A stretch of DNA of 56,870 nucleotides from Klebsormidium nitens (Eukaryota; Plantae; Klebsormidiophyceae): NCBI GenBank assembly GCA_000708835.1, contig DF237050.1:1-56870 (forward strand). The letters are read 5' to 3'. The translations under genes and the position numbers were made by a program. The notes beneath the pieces were generated by a model, which did not search any database, was not told the origin of the DNA, and worked only from the letters and a program-made list of their open reading frames with translations. Positions 16,809 through 34,500 of the stretch are shown here, one piece after another (the first letter of the stretch is position 1; each line of letters opens with the position of its first letter).

Positions 16809-19063
16809 GGAGCCTAAGGCGCGCAGGCCATGGGGCAGATACGTATTTTCGACAAGTCCGTATACGGACTATATTTGGCTGAATTTGTTTGTGCAAAAGA
16901 GGGTTAGTAGAGTAGCGAGTCTGCTTCGATCAGGATCAATTGTACACTAACCGATTATTTTGTGATTGTCTCAATTCAGTGGACTAGCACTGTAAGATAC
17001 ATGTGGTTAGGTGGGTAGGATGAATTATGGAACAGAATCTTGACCTGGCGTGTAAAAGTAGAGTCTTGCGAGTCCTTGTAGGTATCGGACACATTGCCCG
17101 ATAGATACCAAAAAGGGACTATTGCAGCCCTATGATTTGACAATACAAACATTGGATTGGAGCATTATAAAGTCGTGGCCCATGACTACTAGTTAGACAT
17201 ATAACCTTTCTCCCCACGCCAGACAGGATGGCCAGCGTGGCTTGTGCATGTGATCGATAGGTCGATTAAGTCATAACCGCAAAATTGACTCCTCACTGAA
17301 CTATCTTAGTGACGTACAGTAGCTGCATGGGACGACGTATGATTGGAAGGAAACTTGCACTCTAGAACAAGTTGTTGAGTAAAGTATTTAGTATGTGCTA
17401 GCTAACATAAGTTAGTCGATCTCATGCACGCACTGAGAGCATGAAGTCTGTACACAAGTTCATGCGGGGCCCAAGCTGATTGCAGCGCATGTTAGCCGGG
17501 TATGTTTTCTGAATGAAAGACCATCGAGCCAATCAAAATTAGCGTAGTACGACACGCATGCAAGAATAGGGGTGCATTTGTGGCAACAATTCGTACGGTC
17601 TGTGCCGGCGGGTGTCCCTTGTAGTAATTAATTGTACGTAGCTGCGCGGCCGCCCATGCATGCGCTCGATCATGCAAGCTGAAATGGTGATCGATGCTCC
17701 AGATGCAGAAGGAAAAGTCATGTGCGGTGCGCTTGTCTCAGTGAACGGGTCATCATGTACGCATGGCACATGTTCAGTCTGGCACTCACACAAACGTATG
17801 TCAGAAAAAGGCGGCCAGGATGCAGCAGCAGTCTCTGCATCAAAATCTTTGCATGCTCTGAGCCCGAAGAACAACTAACTGTTTGCATGGTGTTTTACGC
17901 TTTCAAAGTCCTCCTCACGATGCAGCTCTCGTACGCAGACGTGCAAGTGCAACACCTATGCGCGCACAGAAGCTTCTACCGTTTGGTCGAATCATTAAAG
18001 ATAAGTTCACTGAATCGTGAAGGCCGGCACACCCGTTGGTATAATTACACAGGTTAGCCATGTACTACAGACGCTAAGGAGCACACGTGATCTCTAAGGT
18101 CGGTCGTTGTATAGATTCCTACATTCGGCATGGTATACCGCTTGACGAGAGCTAGTGCGAGATCGAGATTGACGTTGTGCAGCATTTGGGCCGTCCGATG
18201 GGAGCTGAACGTCGATAATCGAAACGCTCAATTCCGTGCGATCTGCAGGCGTCGGTTCGAGGCGGGTTTTGGTCAGGCGGTGAGATCAGCTGCATGAAAG
18301 TTGATAGTTTGATGGAAGCGTTCATGTGCGGGGCGCTCTTTGCGTCCTCTTAAGTGAAAACGAGCTCACTACTGTATCAGCTTTGCGACCTCGCTTTGAA
18401 AGAATCTGATTCTGCGGTTCAGGAAAAAGTGTCATCGGCCTTCTTCTGTTTTTCACTTTGCTCGGGCGCTGGGAATTATGACCAGCAGCAGCTCAAGAGA
18501 GGACCAATCTTTGCTATGATTGAGAGGCGAGCGCCTGATCGCTCTCCTTGCGGTGGTGACTGAGGACCTCCAGCGGATTCAGAGCTCCAAGGTCTTGAAG
18601 TAATTTCTCCAGGTAAACCAAGAACAACGTTCCTTGCGAGGAGCTTGGACTCGTGCTCAGAACGCCATGGCTCATTTTGTGCCAGAACAACCTAGGTGTC
18701 TGGTGCAGGCTTTGCTTGGCTACTTTTCGTCTTCGTGCATGCCTCTAATCCGGTTGCAGCGAATGGATCAGAATCAGGCAGTAGCTCCTAGAATCTCTTG
18801 CTGAAGTTGTACAACTGAAAATCGGGCACAAATTAGGCGCAAGGATATGAATCCCATGCAAAGGGACTGAGAGTCTGATAGATATCACTCAAACACAAAG
18901 AGGGAGTCAACTAAAGACGTTGAATATTGCGTTCAGTACTCTGCATAGGTCCCCTTTTTGACCAGATTCGACGTCAAGACAGCAAGAAAAAGTCGCACAG
19001 ATTCAGATTCAAATCCAGTCCGTGTTCTTCTGCAGCAAGGGCGTTGATATTGTTCTTTCTCAG

Positions 19064-21723
19064 ATGGGACCCAAGAGCAGAATGAAAATACCAGACCTGG
19101 AGATCAAGACAGACAAGGAGACATACTTGTCCATTGTGTACAAGGTTGCGCGCAAGCTGCGCTTGAACATCATCCGGAAGCCGGCATCCGTTGAAGAGCT
19201 GGACTACATCAGTTTCCTCCCTCCTGGGAAAGGTCTTGGTCAGCTAGAATCTGCAATAGTTTTTAGCCTGCAAAGGGGGTACGAGAAGGCCAAGCACTGT
19301 TCTCCGGACGAAGTCTTTAGCCAGACGCAAGGCAGCCTTTCAGGGTTTCAGGTCCAAGACAACATTCATCAAGCAGGCTTTGGGGAGGGATCAGCGTCGC
19401 TTGATAACCTGTACCCAACGGTGCAGCCCAAGCGGGTTTTTGACTCGTACATGCTGAGCGGCGGAAGGAAGACGCCAGACCGGGGTGTCTTCTACCGGCC
19501 GTGGTCTCCCGAGAGCCCGGACCCCTGGATAGGGCTAGTCTTCGGCTTCGAGACCGCGCCCGGAATATTCCAAGACGCCTGGGTGACCAACCCCTTATGC
19601 CTGCAAGCTTTCCAGAGGCCCTTCGACGCCTTCAAGCGGGCCTTGCAGAATCTTAAGCGCAGGACAGAGGGCCAGGTCACAACCTGCATCGAGCCGTCCT
19701 TGAAGGCGGTGACGCCACACTGGGGAGAGTACAAGAGAAGCGCCTGTCACGCCGTGCGCTTCGGGCAGCCTCCAAGCGCGGTCTACGTAACGTTCTTTGG
19801 AGATCATCGGGACTGCCCTCGATTCCTCCTTCCGATTGTCGTCCAGGGTTTCGCGGACGCGCTGAAGTGCCACCCGGAAAGTGTGGTGAGCTCCTCCAAA
19901 GTTTCTCGCAAAGCTTCTCCATATACTCATCTCACAGTATTAATTCGAACTGGCACTTGCGTTGGGTTCGCCTTTAAAAGAACCTTTTTGGTTCAAATCC
20001 TGGTAGGTCTGCCATTCCGCTAATCGAGAGCACAAGATTGAAAGCCGTTCAAATTCTGCCCCCGGTTATGTTAACGGTGTAAGAACGGATGCTTTGAGAC
20101 TCTACGAGGTACGTCGCAACAGCCATCTTGCACAATGTCCGGCGGCGATACCGATCCAATTGAATCTCGAAGGCGACTCCCAAGGAAAAGTGTCCAAATT
20201 TAAACATTCAAACCAGTCATACTGCAGATAAAACCCTCGACCACAGTCAAAGCTTGAAGCAGATAATCGTTGTCTTTCCTTGGCACTTCCGTCTCTGGAT
20301 AGCTCATTTTGTGGTAGGCAGATGTCCGGTCACTTCAGTGATTATCCGCGTCCTTCAAATGTCGCCTTAAAAGCAGGCCCCTCAGTCTCCAACGTACTGC
20401 CGTTTGGTGTAGGTTGAAGGCCACCTTTTACCTTTGGCTCTCACAGGTTGTGGTTTTGTGGACGAGCCAGCAGGTCCACGTGGCGTCAGCAGAGGACCAG
20501 ACGGCAATGTACACTCTGGGACGGATGCAGCATCTGCACAAGTTTCAGATTGACGCCGCGGACTACAAGGAGCGGATCTGTGCCGCGCCTTTCCAGGTGA
20601 GCGCTTAAGCTTAAGGTTGCAAACCTGTTTCGTTATTTAGGCGTTTTGTGACAGGAAGGAAGCGGACGACTGGTGCCTTAATGGCAGGAGCACGTCAGAA
20701 GGAAAGACAAGAAGGTCAGAAGGGCTTCCGTTCCCGTGCGCTAGTTTCTGAAGGAGATTTACTTGCTGAAAGGCATCTTCGTCTCTGCAATAAGGCGACG
20801 GCAGTCCCCGTCGTTTGAAGGTTCAAGCAGACCCTGTGTCAGTAGCACCAATTTCGATGATAGAAGTCGGGAAATGAAACGGAAGGGAGAAAGCGAGCGA
20901 AGAGCCGAGCCGAATAAATCCAATCCTACAGACAGGTTTTGTGCGCATTTCGCAGTTCAGTGGGTTGTCCAGCGACGGGTATCTGGTGGAATGGAAGCCC
21001 TACCCGCTGTACGGCAAGACGGAAGCTCTAAGGGTCCCACGTGGCACGAGCTCAGAGTCGATGCGTGTCCTGTACCCTGTCCCAAGAAGCGAGGCCGTGG
21101 CGCGGAAGCTGGAGCGACTGGGGGATAAAATCCCCATCGTGACAGAGCTCTCGTTACCCCAATGTGCAAAGGTGATTGTACATGGGGCATCAAGTTTTCA
21201 CAATCTCAAAGTGGTTGTCTTGCAAGATTGTGACGATTGAAAGGGGCCGCCGGCCTGATGTCTCTTTATTCTGGTCCTTGAGATTCCGGTTTGGTCCGGG
21301 AATTTGGCGCATGCTCGCTCTCAAAGTGTCTGACGTTGGTTCATCGCTAAGAACAGGACCGCTGGATCTTTCAAACCCCTCTCTGTTTTCTTTCACAGCG
21401 TGTGCTGATCCGAAGAACTTGTCACAAAGAGATCTTTTCTGTGTGGAAGCTGGAGCCTCACAACACACTTAGTTTTAAAAACACTGATGATCCACGAGAT
21501 AATATAATGGATAGGAGACTCTTGCGAATCTTGAGAGCGCTCTCTCGTCTAAGAGCAACTCCGTCCACCCCAAGTTCTAAGTCACTCCGTAACTTTTGTG
21601 CAGTGTGGAAAGAAGGGTGAGGACCTTCTCCGATGTGCGAGGTGCCGAAAGGAACGGTACTGCTCTCGGGGCTGTCAGATCAAGCACTGGGCGGCTGGAC
21701 ACAAGAAAGTATGCACACCGTGA
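19064..21723 (+). CDS. MYND-type zinc finger protein with an N-terminal uncharacterised (DUF1444-like?) domain, paralogue A, ~435 aa
   Basis: Exons 19064-19885, 20447-20596, 20956-21171, 21604-21723, all phase 0. The spliced C-terminus CAK-CGKKGEDLLRCARCRKERYCSRGCQIKHWAAGHKKVC is a canonical zf-MYND (C-x2-C...C-x2-C...YCS-x2-CQ-x2-HW-x3-HK-x2-C). An upstream exon is possible. Confidence 0.85.
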
Positions 21724-23581
21724 CGACGACCCGTGATTTAAGTGCCTTGCCGATACAGTAGCGATGCTTCTAACTTTCGAGGCGCAGATAAGTCTGATCT
21801 GAGAAGGAATCCGACAATTTCTTCCACGGGTGTTTAGTCGGCTTTGCTTTTGCATGCAGGAAGATGGAGAATGGCAATCCATCAATCTTCTCGGTTATTT
21901 GGAGTTGCGCCGGAACTTGAATTCAGGCAGCAAAAACAATTCCGATGCCTATCTTCGCGTTGGATGAATACAATTGTTTGATCATCGGCCAACCAAATTA
22001 ATGCTGCATTGCAAGTACTGGACCGATGTATGACCTCCATTGAGGTTGCAGCATGGTCGCACAGGTTTCTTACTCACTCTTGGCTCCCTTCCCAATTCAA
22101 TTGTTTGCTCAATGTGTATCGATCGTTCAACTCTAAGCCATGAAGAGCATATGCAGATCCAGAACAATGAATTGGATACAAATGATGGATGTATCGTTTG
22201 TCAGATGGTATGCGGATGCTGATTACGATTTACAAGTTCAACGGTACTCTGATGCATCAATGTTGGTTTCTAGTGTATCGACACAGCAGCAGGGTGCCAT
22301 CGATCAAACGTCGGTCCACGCACGCCGACGCACGGAGGCAGATGCAGCGGCGTCGTCTTCACATCTTCAATGACGCTCGTTGAAGGCCGGATAAGTGTAT
22401 CTCCATCCTTCATGGCACCATGTGGCTTTTGTAAGCATACGTCCTGTACAACAATCATTCACAGAAGCGTGCACCGTCTGGATTACTATATTTGGTTGCT
22501 GATCAGAGTTGCAAAGTAGGCCGGCAACCTGGAGAAAGTGCGCAGTCCTCCAGGCATGACGCCAGTTTCACCGTTTTGCTTGAAACTTCGCGCAAGGCCG
22601 CATGCAGTCGCATGTACTCGACCAGTTGCAAGCATTTGATTTTGTGCAGATAGCAGCAACTGGGCATTCGATAGCCGAACTTGGCCGAACTCGGTGATCG
22701 AAGGGCTCAGTGACCGTCTGATCTCTGGGGTTCGATTCAGGTCCGGCGCTCACACCAGCTTTGAATCGCGGTTTGCAGATCGTTTTGATCTTGATGGAAG
22801 GGTCGCGGCGCCGCGCTCTTTGAGTTGGCAGCTTTGGTGGTGAGATCACTTGATCAGCTCTTTGCCTTCGCTTTGACGGATCCTCAGCTCTTCAACGCAG
22901 GGACTTTTACCAAAGCGGCCTTTTATCTTGTACCGCTTAGTCGCTGGTACTTCAAGCTAGCAACAGGTCAAGGGAGAAATCCATCTTTGCTGGCAGTCCA
23001 GGAGCGAGCTGAACCAATCTGGTGGTCATGCGTGACACAGACCCTCTAGCAAAGTACAACTCCAAGGTTTTCAAGCAATCTGATTTCCAAACGAAGCAAT
23101 GCTCAGGAACTCATTGAACTCGTGCTGAACGCCTTCGCAAGGCTTTCCACTAGGTATCATTGTGGTCCACGCTCTTGCTGGCCTTCGTGCATGCATCTAG
23201 CTGGTTCATAGGTAGCAGATGATTCGAGGATAGGGAGTAACTCTAAAGATGTTCTCAGGATTACTCGCAAAAAATTGGGAAAACTTTGGACGACAGAAGT
23301 TGCTGTTATCTTCTTCATGCAAACCTGACATTCAATCTAGAATAGAAGGTCAGGAATCAGCTGAAATCAGTGATCACAAAAATTTGGGGGGAGATAGCAG
23401 AAGAGTTGGAGAAACAGCTAAAAAGGAGAATACTTCAAATTTTCATTGTGCCTAAAACTTTGGTCTAACTAGATATGCTTGAAAAAGACAGCGCGAAGTT
23501 AAGGGTAGGAAGAGTCCGCAGAGAGACAGATTCAGAACATACTCTTTTTCTGCAGAAAGTGTTTTGATAGTTCTTCTCAAG

Positions 23582-26242
23582 ATGGGGCCCAAGAGCAAGA
23601 CGAAGATACCAGAAGTGGAGATTAAGATCGACAAGGAGACGTACTTATCCATTGTGTACGAGGCTGCACGCAAGCTGCGCTTGAACATCATCCGGAAGCC
23701 TATATCTGCTGAAGAGATGGACTACATTGATTACCTCCCTCCCGGGGCAGATTCTAGCATAAAAGAAGCTGCAATAATGTTCAACCTGGAAAGTGCGTAC
23801 GAAAAAGACAAGCACTTCTCTCCAGACATAGTTCGACGCCACACCCTCGGCGCACTTTCGGTATATCAGATCCAAGCTCAATTTCAGGCAGTCATTGATG
23901 GAGACCTGACGTCGCTTGATAACCTGTACCCGACAGTGAAGCCCAAGCGGGTATGTGACAATTACTTGCTGACAGACAAAAGGAAGACGCCAGACCCGGG
24001 TGTCATCTACCGGCCGTGGTCCAGTGAGAGCCCCGACCCCTATATAGCCCTAGTATACGGATACGAAACCGGGCCCGGGGTGTTCAAAGACGCCTGGGTT
24101 TACGATCCCTGTTTCCTGCAAGCTTTCCAGAGCCCCGCAGATGCCTTTGAGCGGGCCATTCAGAATCTCGGGCGCATAACCGTGGGCCAATTCAAGATCT
24201 GCGTCGAGCCGTCCTTGAAGGCGGTGACGTCACACTGGGGGGAGTACAAGGGGACGAACTGCCGGGCTGTGCGCTTCGGGCAACCTCCAAGTGCGGTCTT
24301 CGTCACTTTCTTCGGAGACCACCGAGACTGCCCTCGGTTCCTCATCCCAGAAGTCGTCAAGTTGTTCGCGGAGGGGCTGAACTGTGACTTAGAAAGTGTG
24401 GTGAGCTTCTTCGCTAATATCTGGATCTTGGTTGGAAGTTTACGAACGGATTGAATCAGCAATAAAGTTTCACTCCTTTTGTTCAAAAGCTTCTCTTTGC
24501 TGAGATTATCAGTTCGGTCCTTTTGATGGAGGACCGACCTTATCTGACGATAAGCTTGCGTCATCAGCCAGAGCAGCCATCGTGTTATATCCGATGGCGT
24601 TGCCTCTCGTCCACACTTTGACTGCCAAGGGGGCCATTATTTACCAGTCAACTTTTCAGATGCTCGTACTGTAGAATGAATCTAAGTTGCATCCGATCTT
24701 CGATCTACCAAAAATATTTCCTCTTCTTTTGCATGTCTTTCTAACTGGAAGCTCAGATTGGGGAAGATCTGGACTTCCAATTCCGGTGACATCAGGCGTC
24801 TTCCAAATCGGGCTTGAAGAAGGCCTCTTCGTTTTTGATTCTAGGGTCAAAGGATTTACCGTTATAATAAGATTATTTACCTGTTGATCGCGCAGGTTGT
24901 GGTTCTGTGGTCTGGTCAGCAGGTCCACGTGGCGTCAGCGAGGGACCAGAAGGCAATGTACACTCCTGGACGGATGCAGCACCTGATGAAGTTTCAGACG
25001 GAGGCTGCTGCCTACAACGACCGGATCTGCGCCACGCCTTTCCAGGTGAGGAGCGATGAGCTGCTAATGTCGGCACTGGACTGAAACAAGAAAGGAGCGC
25101 AAGTTTCATGCCTCAAATGTCAGGAGGCAGCCAGACAAGGAAACAAGAAAAGTCGGAGCGGTTCCGTTTTTCAGTGTGCTATCTACTCGGCATAACTTCA
25201 TAAGTAGACACTTTCAAGCGGTCCTCTTTGTTGCCACAACTTGAATAAATCTTGAAGCGTAAGGCTCACGCAGATCTCGTAACAGAAGCATCTTTTCCGA
25301 TGAAAAGCAACGGGCAAGAAATTTTGGAGGCTAATAGAGCCATTCAGATCCTATTAGGAATAGTGTTCTGAGCGTAACAATGACCCTAAAGACGGCTCTT
25401 GCCGTACTTACGCAGGTCAAGGGACTGTCCAGCGATGAGTCCCTGGTGGAGTGGAAGCCCTACCCGCTGTATGGCAAGATGGAGGCTCTCAGGGTGCCAC
25501 GTGGCGGCGAGCCAGGGTCGACGCGTGTCCTATATCCTGTCCCGAGGACCGAGGCCGAGGCGCGGAAGCTGGAGCGACTTGGAGACAAGATCCCCGTTGT
25601 TACAGAACTCTCGTTACCTCAGTGCGCCAAGGTGAAAGATCTTAACATACATGGTCTATCTTGAATGCATCTTGAGTGCTTCCATTTTTTAATATTTTCT
25701 AGCAAGCTCGTATTGTTGAAAGGCGGCTGTCCGCTTGATGCCTCTGTGTCTCAAGATTTTGAATCATTCATTTGCATCGGAAGCGAGGCGCATGCTTGCT
25801 TTTGAAGTAATAGTCATCAGATAATCGAGGTGAAACTCCCTCATTTGTCTTAGAATCAGGCCTGATCGCTCAGTCTTTTCCCCGAGCCTTTTGTATGTTT
25901 TGACAGATGTTTTTACCAAGCATTACAAATCAGTAGCCTAGCTTTCTACATGGAAGCTAGGTTCTCACAAACGAGTGTTCGTCCTTTTGGAACACTATGA
26001 GATTAAAAACCCAGTGAGAGCTTGAGTGATCTCGTGAACCTAACGTGCTTGCTTGATTAAGGTCGTTAATCAGTTCCTCCTCCTGATCTCGATCGTTGAA
26101 TGATTGTGTTACGAATGTGCAGTGTGGGAAGAAGGACGAAGATCTTCTCCGATGTGCGAAGTGCAAAAAGGAACGGTACTGCTCCCGGGACTGTCAGATC
26201 AAGCATTGGGCGGCTGGACACAAGAAAGTCTGTGCACCGTGA
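23582..26242 (+). CDS. MYND-type zinc finger protein with an N-terminal uncharacterised (DUF1444-like?) domain, paralogue B, ~434 aa
   Basis: Exons 23582-24400, 24896-25045, 25416-25631, 26123-26242, with the same intron positions as paralogue A. Identical blocks include DKETYLSIVY, ARKLRLNIIRKP, SLDNLYPTV, EPSLKAVT, FFGDHRDCPRFL, VEWKPYPLYGK. The C-terminus is CAK-CGKKDEDLLRCAKCKKERYCSRDCQIKHWAAGHKKVC. Confidence 0.85.
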
Positions 26243-28565
26243 CGGCGATGCGTGACACAAAGTGCGCTGCTATAACGATAGTTCGACTTTTGAGGCTGAC
26301 AACTGAACGCTATGTCAATCTAATCAGGACTCCCAACAGATTGTTAACGCCTGCCGTTTTCTTCAACTGTTCCTTTCGGCACACGGGGACTGGACGTCAT
26401 TGACGGGTCCATCTTCCTACCTCTTTCCTGAATGGCAATCTCCACGGACAATTTCTATCACGTATAGGTTTTAAAGCGAAAACGCATTTTCAAAAACTCG
26501 CTTGTCTCAAACCGATAGATGCATTCAACGTGATTCAGTTCGCGGATTTGTGATGATGTCACGGTGGAAGACTGGAAGCGCTAGCATGGATTGTTCTCGG
26601 TTCCTGGGGCAGTCAACACCCCAGCACACTGGGATTAGGTAAAAGTCGGTCGCAGTGCTATCTCGAAACCCCGGAGGCACGATTGCTTATGACAGGGTTA
26701 ATTCAAAGCAAATCATGTTGTGTCAGGAGTGCCAGACAACAAGAGGCTAGAAAAGCTGGTTTGCAGGAGTATCGTAGTGTAGCTTGTTCGAACTCGTTAG
26801 AATCCTGTATTGACACCCTTCGGGCCCATGGCTTCGGCTACAGTCCTTATAATAGAAGCATGAACGAATGTCGTTAGAGCTCCACTTAGTCTAGTATGAC
26901 CATTTTGTGTCCCAAACGAATAAGTATCATTTTGGATGTTGAGATCCTTGGCGGAATACAAGGGCTTGCATGAAAGGAGCACATATCGTGGAATTTCATG
27001 AGCTTGCAGATCAACGTTAAAATTCGGCAAGTACTATCCACGATAATCTGTTTGTTTTGCGCATATCTCTGCCGGAAGCGTTCTGATTTTGGTTTGTTTT
27101 CGCCGAAAGGTGTGAAAGCTCCTCTGAGGTCCGCTAAAGCATTGAGGGGCGCACTCAACTACAGTACATGATCTATACGTACATACTTGGTACATGTTTC
27201 ATGCTTGAAATCAAAATTACATGCGTGTACAGCAAATGACAAGCTGGAGATCTCGGTCCTGGCCTTGATCTATCCGATCAATTTGCAAGGTCAATTCTGC
27301 GCCAGCATATCGTGACATGTGGCTCCCCTGTTCATCTCTCGACATCACTTTATGCTTTCCGATGCCGCGGTTTTGTGACGCGCCAAATTCCAACAACTGA
27401 CAAAGCGCTCGATATAGAGCTTGATTGCAGATGCTGACAATATCTACGATACAATAAAAGCTGTTTGTAAAACCAACGCAACCACAATTCTAATCAAACG
27501 CATTTCACCTTCCCTTCAGAGTCTGCATCACTTCTTGCAAGGGATCATCTTTCCCTTTGAAACGCATTAAATGTCAGCGCATTGGATGCATCGCATAAAT
27601 CATTTGTATCTTCAATATGTAAATGGGGACACTCGTTCACGAGCAGGTAAACAGAGAGATCTTCGGTCAAAATCGGGCTTCTCATTTATCATCTGGATTG
27701 CTTTCATACAAGAACTCAATAGTTGGTAGGGCTACTACTGTAAACCTCAAAACCTATTCACGTGCACTTTCTCGTCTACAGAACACCAAATTCAGCACTC
27801 TAGTACTGAACTGAGCCAACAAGCTACAATTTGCCTACCAGCCAGCCAACGCTTTGATTCCTTCCACTTTGAAATGCAGACCGTCTGATCTGCTTTCTTT
27901 TCTGCCTGGCCGGGGTTCACTGACTTGACACAAAATCTGGCACAGCCACCAGATCGTACTCTTGCCCCCTTCTAGGATATATGTTCCTTCCCTTCCGGCT
28001 AAGGGCCACTGTCCCAGCTACCTTGACGGCTAGAGTCCCTTCCTGAAGCATGCAACTGGAGGAGGTCTTGTGCAACTCTGTCCCTGAATTGCTTGAATGC
28101 AACTCCTTCCTAATGCAACGCTTACATCTGATGCAGAATGCAACCCCATCGTCTGATCGACCTCCCGGATCGCAAACTCCAGAGGGAATTCTTTCCGTCT
28201 CTTTCCGTCCACCACCTCCGAGAACCGCGATGGCCATCTCAAAGTTTGACGATGACGCCCCCTATCCGTATAAGGCCCAAGTTTCATCTTCAGGATGACC
28301 GATGACCCAGCATCTATCCATGGCTTGCTTGCCGAAATTCTCGACCAACTTTGACCGGAGTTCACCCTATACCTGAACCGCTACCGGAAGCCACAGGATG
28401 CCGATACGCCGACTCATCCGTTTACCTTTTTCAAGCTCGATCACTAGGTTCTCACCGGTCTACCAGACACCTTCTATCAGTTTACCTCCCTCTCAGCTTA
28501 AGTACCCGGGTATGATTGCAATTTGACGACTAGCCCATGTGTTTCCACCCCTAGCAGCCAGACCT

Positions 28566-31500
28566 CTAAAAGCCGTCCTCAAAGAGCGGAACCCAGCGAT
28601 AGACCACCGAGCGGCAGACGTTACATTCGACGAAGGATGGATTGCCGACCGCCTCCTCCTTGCACGCGGTGCAGAGGCAGCGGTGGCCGCACGGTAACGC
28701 CGCCCACGTCACGCGCCGTTCCCAGCACCTGCGGCAGGCGTTCTCCGGCGGGACACGTGGCGCGCGCGACGGCGGGGGTGCAGGGGCCGCGGCTGGGGGA
28801 GGCTGCAAGAAGGTTGGATTCGAGCGACGTAAGTGGAGGGAGAGAGCTTAGGCCTAAAGATCGGTTGAAGAGGTAGCGAATTCTGTTTCGAACGTGAACA
28901 AAAAGACGGCAGGGCCACTTTACTCATCTTAACAGACTGACACATCGTGGGAAAACTTTCACGGATGGCGCTCTCTCCCTACGGCAATGACACACGAAGG
29001 ATACGCAAAGGCCTATGATATAATGTCGCCAAGCCCGACTATCTTTCATTCAGATCCTTCAGACTACCTCACATGCAAGTCAAAGAGCCCTGGCCAAACC
29101 CCCACGCCTCAATGAAGCTCTGTTTTGTCAACATCTGGAACACTCATCAATTGTTATAGCCCTTCTGTAATCTTACCTTCCAGTCCATGAAAGAGAGGAA
29201 AGAGCGCCCGGTGGGCGCCTCCCGAGCACCAAACGGGGTCCACTCTCGCTCCTGCTCCGGCTGGAAACTCGCCCCGAGGTGCATCCCCGCCTCGCCGTAC
29301 CGGGAGCCCTCCACGAGTGCTCGGCCCGGCGAGATCCCCCCTCCAATTGCCCCCAGACGGCTCTGCAGAACTCCCCCCATGTCCGGAACCGGGCTCTCGG
29401 TGAAAGTCCGTGTGCGCCCATCGGGGGTCAGCGACCGGAAGTCGAACGCGTTCTGCGGGCGGTTGAACTCGCCGCGCCGGTAACGGTCGCCGGGGGGTGC
29501 TCCCGGGGCGTTGGGCTGGCGGAGCAGGTGGTCGAAGTTCTGGGGGCGCAGCGGGCTCGGGGAACCGGTGTACGGCGACGGGCCCCGCGAGGGGGGGTGC
29601 GGGGCCGGGCTACGGCGCCCGGGGATAAGGCCCGGGTGCTGGGCCATCCGCTGGAGCATCATCTTGTGCTCGAACATCTCCCGGTCGATCTCGTGCGGCG
29701 ACCGGGGGCTGTTGAAGAGCTGCCGGGCGGCCGCCCCAAGCGAAAGCTCCCGGTGGATATCGTCGGGGGGGAACGCATCGGGCGTCGGGCTGCCCAGGTA
29801 GAACTCGCGGTCCTCCTTCCGGAAACCAAACCCGGGCGGAACCTGGAGCGCTTCCGGGGCGGAACGCCGACCCGGGAAACCAAAGGGATCCCCCGACGTG
29901 GGCTCCGTTGAGTTGCCCCGGGCGGTCGAGTTGGGTGTCGGGGTAGGGGGAAGCGGGGTGAAGGCTGTCAGAAGGCTGCTCGGGGGCCCCTCCGACAGGT
30001 CCGGCGTGCTCGGGAAGGGTTTGGTTGCGGGGCTGGCGGAAGGGGGGGTCATTTCGCCTGCCTTGAGATCCCCCCCGGTGGATTCCGCAGCCTGTTCCTC
30101 TGTGGGCTGCTCCGCTGGAAGTTCCGGCGAGTCCGCTTCCGTTTCGCCCAGCTCCTCTGTTCCGTTCGGCTCCTCCACGTTTTCGTCCGCGTCTCCCTTT
30201 TCCTCAGGGACGGCTTCCGGCTCGGGAGCTTCCGTTCGCTTCTCGGAAACTGGTTCCGACTCCTCCCCTTCCTTGCTTGGCCCCTTGTCCCCCTGCGCGG
30301 CCGACGCGTACGACCGCCCGGAGGAGACGAACTTGGTCGGGGGTTTGGGCGGCGGCGGCGGCGCGGCCGCGCGCGGCGAGCGCGGCATGAGGACCACGTG
30401 GGTGGAGGCGCCCGTCCCGGTGGGCACGATCTTCATCTTGACGACGTCGGGCATGGAGCGCAGGAAGTCGCTCAGCTTCACGAAGCCCAGCTCGTGGTGC
30501 GGGATCTCTAGCCCGAAGCACGCGCGGAAGTCGCCCTTGAGCGACGACATAGCGTATTGGACGCCGCGCTTGGTGGAGAGGTAACCGGGCAGCCACTGGC
30601 GCAGCTTCACCAGCCAGGGCGGGCACTTGACGCTCCCGGGGATCGCGACCGGAGGCGGGGGCGACGCTTCGAGCGCCGGTGGAGTTTGCTCGGGGGACGT
30701 CACGCGACCGTTGGGTTCGTCACTCGTTTCCGTCGGGTGGGTTTCCGTTCCGGTCGCGGACAGGGGCGGGGCGTCGAGGGGTTTGGCGAGGGCCGGTGGT
30801 TTCTGCCACGGCGACTGGAGGCGCTTCTCCTCCCAGCTGTTGACTTCCCAGGGCACCGGCTCTGGCGAAGGCGCGGCCGCGGCCGCGGCCGCGCGGGCGA
30901 GGCTGACGGGGTTTGGGACGTGCCGGGAGGTCAGTCGTTCCGACTCCGGCGAGCTCATTCCGTCTGCGGGGCTTTCCGGAATGCGAACGAGGACGGAAGC
31001 GGGGGTGTCTGGGGTTTTGCATTCGGGGGGTTCCTCCCAGACGAGGGAGTCGGGTCGTGGAACGGCCGCCTTCACTTCCACCTGGAGACAAGGAAACGGA
31101 GGAGAGGAAGTGTTGGCAGCTGTACTTTGGTAGAAGCAGATATTCGAGCAGCTGCTGAGCCGGATTATGGAGCTGGAAACGGCCTTTCTGCAGAAGCCTT
31201 TAAGAGATTGCGAACTTTTCCAGCGTCAATGGATAAAATTTTGGTTTGTGTGCCGAAATTTGAGGAAAATTCAACAGTTGGACATACCAATCTTCTTCAC
31301 ATATCCACACAGTCTCCTCATTTCGTGACTTCAGGGTAGACAGGCTCGTCCTGATCCTAGCTCCAGCTATCAGCGTGATGCTATTGGACCATAGTGCAGA
31401 TCTCCGTATCAGGCCTCACCTTTTTGCCGAATATGACCACGTAGTGTTGCCTGCAGGCCTTCTGCGCTGTGACCTCGCTCTTGAAGGCGACGAAGCCAAA

Positions 31501-34500
31501 GCCGCGGGAGTGCATCCCGGTCGCCGTCTGAGACCCGATCACGATCGCGTCGTCAACGGGGCCGAAGTTGGATTCGAAGTACTCCTTCAGGTCATCTGCA
31601 GGGTTCGAGAAAAAGATAATTTGAATCGACGAGGAGATTCTTGGCATAAATGTAGCGTTCAGAAGCGCTTCAAAGCTGTAGTCGGTCAAACAGGAAATAA
31701 GGGACACGAGAAGCAGCGCTCTGTGACACCCAAAGAAAGTCGGGTTTACCAACGACTCAGGATAGAGACCCTTTTGACCGAAAAGGATAGTGGTTCGTTG
31801 GAAAAAGAGGCAAAAGTGAAACTCTATAACGATAGAAAGTTTCCTTCCCTCAAAGCTCTGACTTACCAGCGTCAGCAGATTCGGGCAGGCCACCGACGAA
31901 AATCTTGCGGTTGAAGTCCTCGGTCTTCCACTGCTGCAAAAAGAGACAGTAAGCTGTGCGTTCAGAGTGGTTAACCGGGCCAAAAATAAAGCAAGCTTAG
32001 AGACTCGATAGTGTAACGGATTGGCAGAAGAAAATATGAAGGTTCTCGGTCACCAACCACACTAGAACTTCAGAGTTTCGAATGCAAGAGAATCTCTTCT
32101 GGAGTCACGCACGGCACAGAAATGTGGAACGCCCCTTTCAGCGGTAATGAACCATTATTGCTCTCAATACCAATCCCAAAAGTGACATCGCTATGGACAG
32201 GTCCAACGCGCTCAAACGTCAACAGAACGCGCCAGGATGATTATGCACGAACGGCTCAGAAGGCTCATGCAAGGTCGCAGCAGCAAATGCACTTTCACGA
32301 CTTGCCTTGAGCTTCTGCCGGGAGAGGCTGCCCGGCTCCGCCGCATCGCCCAGCATGCCCTTTGGCGGCGCCAGGGGGACCAGCTCGTGTTCCCCGTGCG
32401 CGAAGAAGCACTTTTCGCCGCGCGCGCACCCGTGCGCGGTCCCAAAGTAGCGGCAGAGCTCGGTCTTCGCGTTGGAGGGCATCATGACCGTCTTGGCGGA
32501 AGAGGGCCTCCTGGCAAGAACGAAAAAGTGGGCGAGGAAATTGCTTGGATCATTACTGAAGTCGGTGAGGACCTGTAAGGCTGGATGTTCCAGTTCGATT
32601 ACGGTTCCATCCCAGAATGTCCGCGAAACGAATTCTGTGGTAGAAGGGACCCTCAAGATTGTCGAAGCTTTTTAAGGGACTTCGAAGCACTTGAAACAAG
32701 GTTCACAAGGCCAGTCTTGAGAAATCTTAACGGCATGTATGAACAGTGCTCGCGAGGTCTTCTGCAACATTTTCTCAAATCCAGATCAATGTTTCTGCTC
32801 CGTAGGAGTTCTACTTTGCACACGACGTCTAGAGGCTGAAACCGCCCAAAAAACACACTTTGACATATCTGATGTACACTTACGTCTGGTCGCCCTCCTT
32901 GGTGCCTTTCTTGGCCGCCTCGACGGCTTCAGCGAGCACGTTGTCTTTTCCTGCGCACATGAGAAGCGGCGTTACAATTCACCCCTGTTTTCCTAAAATT
33001 GTGTGGAAGATCAAAAACTTCTTCGAGAAGCACACCAAGCCTCATCAGATGGTACAGGAGTTCCGCAGACGCGGTAGGCAGCAAATAGAGATTACGAACG
33101 TCGTCAGCTACAGCTTCGTGACATCCCTCACGTAAAACTGCGGTGCCGGACACAGTGCAGCCGTTTCCAAGCCCAGATCAACGCTTCTTTTGTTTGATAT
33201 CTAGCTCAAACCAACTTACTAAAGAGTGAATCAAATACTCGGTGTGGGCCTTTTGAAGATCAAGTGTTACCTGTGAAGGCCTCGTCCGGTTGGCGCAGCA
33301 TCTCGCGCATGGGAGGCGATGTGGCCACGTCAATGGGTCTCTGCTTTCTGCAGTTGTAGAAAAAAGCAGGATTGAGCTCAACTTGAAGGACAGACACATC
33401 AACTGGGAGCACTTTAGAAATCTGCTTCTTCGTCAGCACGAATGACCGGAAACTCGCCACTCGGATCGAACAAATTACAGCTCCCCCGTCATAAATAGGA
33501 CAGGCGAACCTTATACTTGCCATCAGGAAACTGAGTGAAGTGCGTTCGGGAAGTCCACTTGGTTTTTGAATTGAAAAGGGCGCACGGAAAAATGGAAAAT
33601 TGCCCGGAGCGTACCTGAGGTTGACCAGCAGTCTGTTCGCGCCAGCCTGCAGCAGCAGCCTGGCGCACTCCACGTGGTCATTCTTGACGGCCCAGAAAAT
33701 GGCGGTCTCCTTGGTTGCGGCCACAATGTTCACGGCCGCAGGCTCCTTGGTCAGCAGGATCTGAAGATGAAGCAGGCCCACGTGTCAGCAAAAGGCAGTG
33801 CTTTAGGCAAAGGCGAAACCCACAAAGCGAGAGAAGTTACATGGTGACAAGAAGCAGCCGCATCCTAAACTAGGGCACTAAGATGCTCCAAATCTGGATG
33901 CCCTGGAAGATTGGTCGCTTTGAACAAATTGCCTCTACGATCAGCGAGAATTTTCTAGCAAGAGCGGGTCAAATCTCACTTAAAGATAGGCTTGACCTAG
34001 AGTCTCCGTCTAAAAAAGTGCTCGTCCAAAGAAGTTTCAGTGCAAGAAAAGGTAAGGAAGCCAACCTTGAGAGCCTCGTAGTGCCCATGAGCGGCCGCCA
34101 CGTGAATTGCTGTGGCGCCGATCTTATTTCCGATGGATCCGCGCGCACCGCCGTCGCTCAGCTGCTGGATGATGCTGCAAGGGTGAGTTGAAATAGCTCA
34201 AGCATCTGTCAGATCAAAGACAGAGAGACGGAGGCAGAGGAATGCAGGATGCCCGACAAAGGCACAGGAAATATTATGCATACTTCAGCAGAAGAAAACC
34301 AACGGTCAGCTGGTAAGAGGTCTCCTTTTTGAACAAATACAAGTAAGTGGCGCAGCAGTTTCAGCAAGTATTAGGAGGCGTGGACCCTGGGACCGGTTCT
34401 CGGAGCGTATGATCGGCGCACCTGACGTTCAGAAGGTTCTTCCCAAGTCGCAGGCACCAGTGAAGAGCAGTGTTGCCGTCTGGATCAGCCTCGTTGGGAT

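Follow-up and report, generated by a model that had tools for sequence, protein, structure and literature searches.

A tandem gene pair of Klebsormidium nitens joining a putative DUF1444-like domain to a MYND finger

The streptophyte alga Klebsormidium nitens carries, on contig DF237050.1 of GenBank assembly GCA_000708835.1, two neighbouring genes of similar build: KFL_001010040 (gene A, 435 amino acids) and KFL_001010045 (gene B, 434 amino acids). They lie in tandem on the + strand between positions 19064 and 26242 of the window, meaning the whole analysed stretch of 56,870 nucleotides, and have four exons each. Both encode a C-terminal zf-MYND finger preceded by a long region without annotation, and this raises the question of what that region is, where it came from and what it does beside a MYND finger. 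The reading judged fairly probable as a whole is that the pair belongs to a gene family of the Klebsormidium lineage whose members combine a DUF1444-like domain, a linker and a MYND finger, act as ligand-dependent adaptors, and owe the N-terminal domain to bacteria.

An earlier sequence-only reading had described two paralogues of about 435 residues with identical exon structure, a C-terminal zf-MYND and an unannotated upstream region, and all of this was borne out. The two genes share one four-exon plan; the MYND finger matches PF01753 at E of about 2e-12, with eight zinc ligands in both genes; and the approximately 390 residues before it gave no Pfam or NCBIfam match even at E <= 10, either as single exons or as full proteins. 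The corresponding database products, found by a protein word-index search, are P0001 (KFL_001010040, 433 amino acids) and P0002 (KFL_001010045, 434 amino acids); such searches returned only A and B themselves and one relative that is also in the set described below.

That set comes from a full-library HMMER search, in which an A and B alignment stripped of the MYND finger was run against 1.84 billion representative proteins at E <= 1e-3. It yielded 16 relatives of A and B, and the number of bacterial proteins at that threshold was zero. Three relatives are K. nitens proteins named “MYND-type domain-containing” (KFL_000070590, KFL_001480120 and KFL_000340170), and the species has at least five family members. 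The rest come from JGI metagenome 3300060285, Logan assemblies (two of them traced, to SRR14092358 and SRR23617307) and one short NCBI contig; the fetched contigs look eukaryotic, with sparse open reading frame (ORF) calls and one retroelement. This is a small, lineage-restricted and previously unrecognised algal gene family. Its tree has two subfamilies with 100/100 support, one made up of A, B and P0003 and the other of the remaining members, and the two align to each other by hhalign at E 1.5e-38.

Direct comparison with Pfam gave no DUF1444 assignment. Against PF07285 (DUF1444, gathering cut-off 23.8 bits), neither A, B nor any of the 18 members matched at E <= 10, with bacterial DUF1444 controls scoring 34–440 bits on the same profile. 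The only Pfam family matched in this region was DUF5688 (PF18941): half of the members (9 of 18) matched it at E <= 0.15, always at profile positions of about 139–190, and the best, P0004, reached 21.1 bits (E 2.5e-4), under the 34.5-bit cut-off. The window pair itself gave no match to DUF5688.

Profile–profile comparison reached further. DUF1444 templates were obtained from a bacterial genome collection probed with short degenerate DNA for the motif DGYDASRIL, giving 91 complete ORFs, ten of them verified with PF07285; this motif is invariant among the templates by construction, since they were selected by it. The hhalign comparisons were as follows.

Algal family against all 91 DUF1444 sequences: probability 92.8%, E 3.9e-7, 261 columns.
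Algal family against a 28-sequence DUF1444 set (the tool's own comparison): 93.4%, E 2.4e-7, 210 columns.
Subfamily 2 against all 91 DUF1444 sequences: 95.3%, E 2.4e-8, 254 columns.
Algal family against the seven Planctomycetota members: 94.6%, E 7.2e-8, 157 columns.
Algal family against the 77 Bacillales-type members: 1.1%, E 0.047, 251 columns.
Subfamily 1 alone (three members) against all 91 DUF1444 sequences: 2.1%, E 0.023, 161 columns.
A/B pair alone against all 91 DUF1444 sequences: 0.3%, E 0.23, 49 columns.

The alignment between the family and the 91 DUF1444 sequences is collinear over nearly the full length of both profiles, and reversed and column-shuffled templates gave E >= 0.09. 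This collinear match, together with the controls, supports a remote homology of the family to DUF1444, which extends to the window pair through its paralogues. All six motif pairings that the sequence-only reading had listed reappear in the alignment. Its proposal of DUF1444 homology therefore stands for the family and does not stand for the two genes taken by themselves, which reach neither a significant profile match nor a Pfam match. Since every member stays below the Pfam cut-offs of both DUF1444 and DUF5688, the algal proteins are a new family of a DUF1444/DUF5688 superfamily, not members of DUF1444. Judged by these scores, divergent DUF1444 proteins of Planctomycetota are closer to the family than Bacillus YtpQ is.

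The bacterial side of this comparison is itself broad. Pfam-positive but divergent DUF1444 proteins (34–51 bits) were seen in Planctomycetota of the Phycisphaerae/Tepidisphaerales (loci L023, L025, L045, L058, L070, L102 and L120) and in Chloroflexus (L073); among the bacterial members, these come closest to the algal family. Four verified DUF1444 genes (L071:3027-3890, L073:1745-2551, L025:3623-4402 and L120:968-1741) also match DUF5688 weakly, with E from 1.7e-5 to 5e-3, so that DUF1444 and DUF5688, listed separately in Pfam, look like kin. Attempts to fish for DUF5688 genes in plasmids and phages with tblastn returned chance matches or nothing; a Brevibacillus AAA_23 protein and a Rhizobium GntR regulator were set aside as such chance matches. 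A PHROGs search gave nothing consistent.

Predicted structures can be set beside the sequence comparison. AlphaFold, given a 17-sequence alignment, returned a model with a predicted local distance difference test (pLDDT) score of 73.9 and a predicted template-modelling (TM) score of 0.70, and this model shows a compact three-domain fold of the YtpQ type. Its nearest neighbours in the ESM Atlas are clusters of DUF5688 (TM 0.51; fused in Bacillota to DUF3846, helix-turn-helix (HTH) or ArdA), unnamed actinobacterial clusters and a DUF1444 cluster. With the last of these, 207 residues align at a root-mean-square deviation of 3.8; TM is 0.62 by target but 0.45 by query, and the models on both sides are predicted. 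Language-model features of P0004 gave three DUF1444 clusters as the top three, with scores of 0.88–0.89 and 189–192 shared features. The DUF1444-like domain ends at about residue 344, within exon 3, and is followed by a conserved linker of about 50 residues (pLDDT < 50) and then by the MYND finger.

Several structural leads were dropped. The ESM Atlas model of P0002 (pLDDT 0.43) and an AlphaFold model from two sequences (pLDDT 36) were discarded for poor quality; the SAM-methyltransferases that the Atlas model had as neighbours (TM < 0.32) were rejected as noise; and an automatic “EspG family” label on one Atlas neighbour was not used, no EspG chain having appeared in the PDB searches. Viral structures in BFVD gave no match.

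What the domain might do is informed by its best-known bacterial relative. The sequence-only reading had called DUF1444 a domain of unknown function, a description now out of date. A 2011 study connected YtpQ with iron homeostasis (PMC3176815), and in 2024 the protein was reported to be CgoN, a monomeric coproporphyrinogen III oxidase that depends on flavin adenine dinucleotide (FAD) and is independent of oxygen (PMC10965808). CgoN consists of three domains, between which a ligand cleft was proposed; nothing similar to it exists in the PDB, and its family was described as almost exclusive to Bacillaceae (PMC10965808). The lack of a PDB match for the algal model agrees with that report.

The resemblance to YtpQ/CgoN (DUF1444, UPF0354, PF07285) is collinear over nearly the whole 265-residue bacterial domain. 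The order of motifs is the same (xxP-[TV]-[VI]; A..N-L; D-x5-R-[ILF]-L; V-P-x-x-D in subfamily 2; P-F or S-F; L-E-P), and the predicted fold is likewise three-lobed. The algal proteins differ in that identity is only 12–17%, their genes have introns, the loop joining the central lobe to the C-terminal one is longer, and the linker of about 50 residues and the MYND finger are added. In P0002, the residues matching conserved DUF1444 positions are P117, A192, N195, D246, R252, L254, F322 and P338. From DGYDASRIL only D246, R252 and L254 are kept; G, Y, D, A and S of that motif are not kept in the algal proteins.

Further replacements concern VPxxD. Its invariant P and D are replaced by L277 and G280 in B and by L and S in A, and both are also replaced in P0003; subfamily 2 mostly keeps them (P in 82%, D in 67%). 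Given that an invariant motif is replaced, any ancestral activity has most likely been lost or altered in the window pair. These replacements bear directly on a rival view, considered unlikely, in which the domain still works as a flavin-dependent oxidoreductase, with a tetrapyrrole or related compound as substrate, and the MYND finger merely targets it to a complex or compartment. Homology to CgoN over the whole three-domain length would fit an enzyme, as would the retained D...R-[FL]-L core and A..N, the VPxxD of subfamily 2 and the purifying selection on the domain. The pair and its closest relative P0003, however, are without the invariant P and D, and the kindred DUF5688 is fused in Bacillota to ArdA, HTH and DUF3846, which are non-enzymatic contexts. 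Photosynthetic eukaryotes use the protoporphyrin route, in which coproporphyrin III is not known to have a role. The preferred reading, that the proteins are adaptors or sensors, draws weak support from the same two observations, the loss of VPxxD in the pair and the non-enzymatic company of DUF5688.

A number of points weigh against this reading and the homology beneath it. The window pair alone has no significant DUF1444 match, so that the link needs the paralogues; the homology rests on an alignment of 17 sequences with an effective sequence number (Neff) of 3.5; and no member passes the Pfam cut-off of either family. The TM scores by query, 0.45–0.51, are borderline, and both compared structures are predicted. 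No solved structure resembling the model was found by sequence profile against the PDB, by Foldseek or by the VIA wide search, whose best hit had Z 5.0 over 67 residues. No clade of bacteria emerged as the donor, and identity of about 12–17% is too low for a reliable tree. Nor is the loss of VPxxD a confident sign of lost function, because CgoN is slow (kcat 0.63 per min) and its catalytic residues are undefined (PMC10965808).

Taken to their limit, such points would make the DUF1444 resemblance a matter of chance or convergence and the N-terminal region an orphan domain born within the alga. This would suit the missing Pfam match of the pair, the non-significant values for the pair and for subfamily 1 alone (E 0.23 and 0.023), the E of 0.047 against Bacillales DUF1444 alone and the TM of about 0.5 by query. 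It is nevertheless considered very unlikely: profile–profile comparison, fold search and language-model features agree, and the 210–261 collinear columns pair the most conserved motifs of both families, with shuffled controls at E >= 0.09. The two outcomes that the sequence-only reading had named as speaking against itself did not arise, since similarity to DUF1444 was found in both profile and structure and the region did not turn out to be a widespread, vertically inherited eukaryotic domain.

The arrangement of the two genes shows how the parts of the protein are distributed over the exons. The features, all on the + strand, are as follows.

18985..19063, + strand: about 80 bp before the start codon of gene A, conserved with 23507-23581 before gene B; a blastn segment (18985-19895 against 23507-24410) extends past the start codons.
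19064..19885, + strand: gene A exon 1, 274 residues, holding most of the DUF1444-like domain; an ORF with donor GTGAGC, equal to P0001 residues 1-274.
19100..21018, + strand: span of the DUF1444-like domain of gene A, residues ~13-345, with introns 1 and 2 inside; 70% identity to B over 390 columns, and placed by the family hhalign alignment.
20447..20596, + strand: gene A exon 2, 50 residues (VVVLW...PFQ); CAG acceptor, GTGAGC donor, P0001 from residue 275.
20956..21171, + strand: gene A exon 3, 72 residues, in which the DUF1444-like domain ends and the conserved linker follows, then the first pair of MYND cysteines (QCAK); proposed donor 21171|GTGATT, by homology to gene B.
21604..21723, + strand: gene A exon 4, 39 residues and stop, the remaining MYND finger; PF01753 at E 2.2e-12, dN/dS 0.135 in the MYND frame; the P0001 tail differs.
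23582..24400, + strand: gene B exon 1, 273 residues; ORF, P0002, and RNA contig joint 24400|24896.
23618..25478, + strand: span of the three-lobed DUF1444-like domain of gene B, P0002 residues ~13-344, with introns 1 and 2 inside; hhalign Q22-350 (profile columns), AlphaFold pLDDT 74, Atlas fold neighbours.
24896..25045, + strand: gene B exon 2, 50 residues; splice sites, P0002, RNA contig joint.
25416..25631, + strand: gene B exon 3, 72 residues, with domain end, linker and MYND start; splice sites, P0002.
26123..26242, + strand: gene B exon 4, 39 residues and stop, the MYND finger; PF01753 at E 1.7e-12, or E 9e-12 over residues 393-432 of the full protein.

The exon lengths are thus nearly identical (A, 274/50/72/39 residues; B, 273/50/72/39), every junction in A and B is in phase 0, and the donors are GTGA and the acceptors CAG. 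The introns of A measure 561/359/432 nucleotides and those of B 495/370/491. One contig from a probable RNA run crosses intron 1 of B exactly (24400|24896, GT..AG); gene A and all other junctions, including exon 3/4, are covered by none of the listed RNA runs. Gene B, at least, is transcribed and spliced. The conserved 80 bp before both start codons are likely a 5' untranslated region or a core promoter.

The MYND finger is formed by exon 4 and the last three codons of exon 3, the first C-x2-C straddling the exon 3/4 junction (QCAK|C). Scores against PF01753 are 47.2 bits for A exon 4, 47.6 for B exon 4 and 45.3 for full-length P0002, all above the gathering cut-off of 22.7 bits, and the eight ligands are complete in both genes (C-x2-C ... 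C-x2-C ... C-x3-C ... H-x3-C). The public model of KFL_001010040 joins donor 21152 (TC|GTTACC) to acceptor 21604, so that the MYND exon is read in the wrong frame and stops 13 nucleotides later. For gene A the donor 21171|GTGATT is favoured over 21152|GTTACC, because the same GTTACC sequence is present but unused in B, because AAG|GTGATT is the better donor, and because conservation is strong in the MYND frame of A; it would restore a complete MYND finger like that of paralogue B. On this evidence, the absence of the finger from the public model would be an annotation error.

The fusion is a constant trait of the family, since linker and MYND exons lie downstream wherever there is enough sequence, namely in four further loci (L001, L002, L124 and L125); at locus L123 the contig ends directly after the linker. 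In two metagenome relatives (L001:6001-8399 and L002:6001-9313), the equivalents of window exons 1 and 2 form one continuous ORF that lacks intron 1; introns 2 and 3 are positioned as in the window genes, and L002 has an extra intron within the MYND finger. An ORF with an RVT_1 reverse transcriptase lies at L001:1930-3684, 2.3 kb 5' of the P0003 gene, on a metagenome contig.

Fusion came before the split into two subfamilies, and the window pair stems from a later tandem duplication, both copies being retained by purifying selection. The family tree places A and B as sisters (98/93 support), with a longer branch for A (0.31) than for B (0.11). At the DNA level their similarity is confined to exons (76–88%) and the 80 bp upstream, and the introns cannot be aligned. 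Summed exon by exon, the ratio of nonsynonymous to synonymous divergence (dN/dS) is 0.33 at dS 0.54, and it falls to 0.135 for exon 4 in the MYND frame; the summed values indicate that both copies are old and under purifying selection.

On the origin of the domain, the most likely course would be that the Klebsormidium lineage took it up from bacteria long ago and that introns and the fusion came afterwards. Such horizontal transfer is plausible because, among eukaryotes, only Klebsormidium-like algae carry the domain within the 1.84 billion proteins searched, and the named carriers are all K. nitens. The alternative, which touches only the origin, is an ancient domain of eukaryotes or streptophytes, inherited vertically and elsewhere lost or diverged past recognition. 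It is possible, though the less probable of the two: the absence of a close bacterial donor (no bacterial protein at E <= 1e-3), the conserved spliceosomal introns 2 and 3 and the deep internal divergence would suit it, but K. nitens is the only named carrier and the other superfamily members seen are all bacterial.

Under the favoured reading, the product would be a three-part protein with an N-terminal three-lobed alpha/beta domain of about 330 residues, a conserved linker of about 50 residues and a C-terminal MYND finger. MYND fingers of ZMYND11, MTG8 and DEAF-1 dock on proline-rich motifs of their partners, and by analogy the algal finger probably docks onto proline-rich motifs of the PxLxP type. 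The DUF1444-like domain, in turn, probably binds a small ligand or client in its inter-lobe cleft; in CgoN this cleft was proposed to hold FAD and a tetrapyrrole (PMC10965808). The proteins would then act as ligand-dependent adaptors or sensors, not as enzymes of the heme pathway. A possible defence or stress role, raised by the sequence-only reading, gained no support.

Known systems resemble this design only in part. Eukaryotic MYND proteins such as ZMYND11/BS69, MTG8/ETO, DEAF-1 and SMYD share the C-terminal zf-MYND with the full C4-C2HC ligand set, but the algal N-terminal module is of a bacterial, DUF1444-like type and not a chromatin reader, SET or SAND domain. DUF5688 proteins of Bacillota (PF18941) are comparable as modules of fusion proteins, often with ArdA, DUF3846 or an XRE-type HTH; they differ in their fusion partners, and bacteria have no MYND finger. 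The combination of a DUF1444-like domain with MYND is annotated nowhere, the UniProt names being “MYND-type domain-containing” or “uncharacterized”, and a literature search found nothing on DUF5688 or on eukaryotic DUF1444.

A bolder version, regarded as a long shot, is that a CgoN-type tetrapyrrole/flavin domain was captured by an early streptophyte alga and wired to MYND, giving tetrapyrrole or redox sensors that recruit partners such as co-repressors. If true, the sensor family would connect plastid or heme metabolism with nuclear regulation in a way specific to this lineage. Within the libraries searched, the family is the first branch of the DUF1444/DUF5688 superfamily in eukaryotes, and it occurs in an alga used to study the steps to land plants and gene gains from soil bacteria. 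A putative fold and superfamily can now be assigned to five K. nitens proteins, three of them named “MYND-type domain-containing” and two “uncharacterized” or “hypothetical”. On the bacterial side, DUF1444 appears linked to DUF5688, and its range extends well beyond Bacillaceae.

Across the window as a whole, an Rfam search returned no matches. GC content is about 0.60 at positions 28001-32000, against 0.46–0.55 in the rest of the window.

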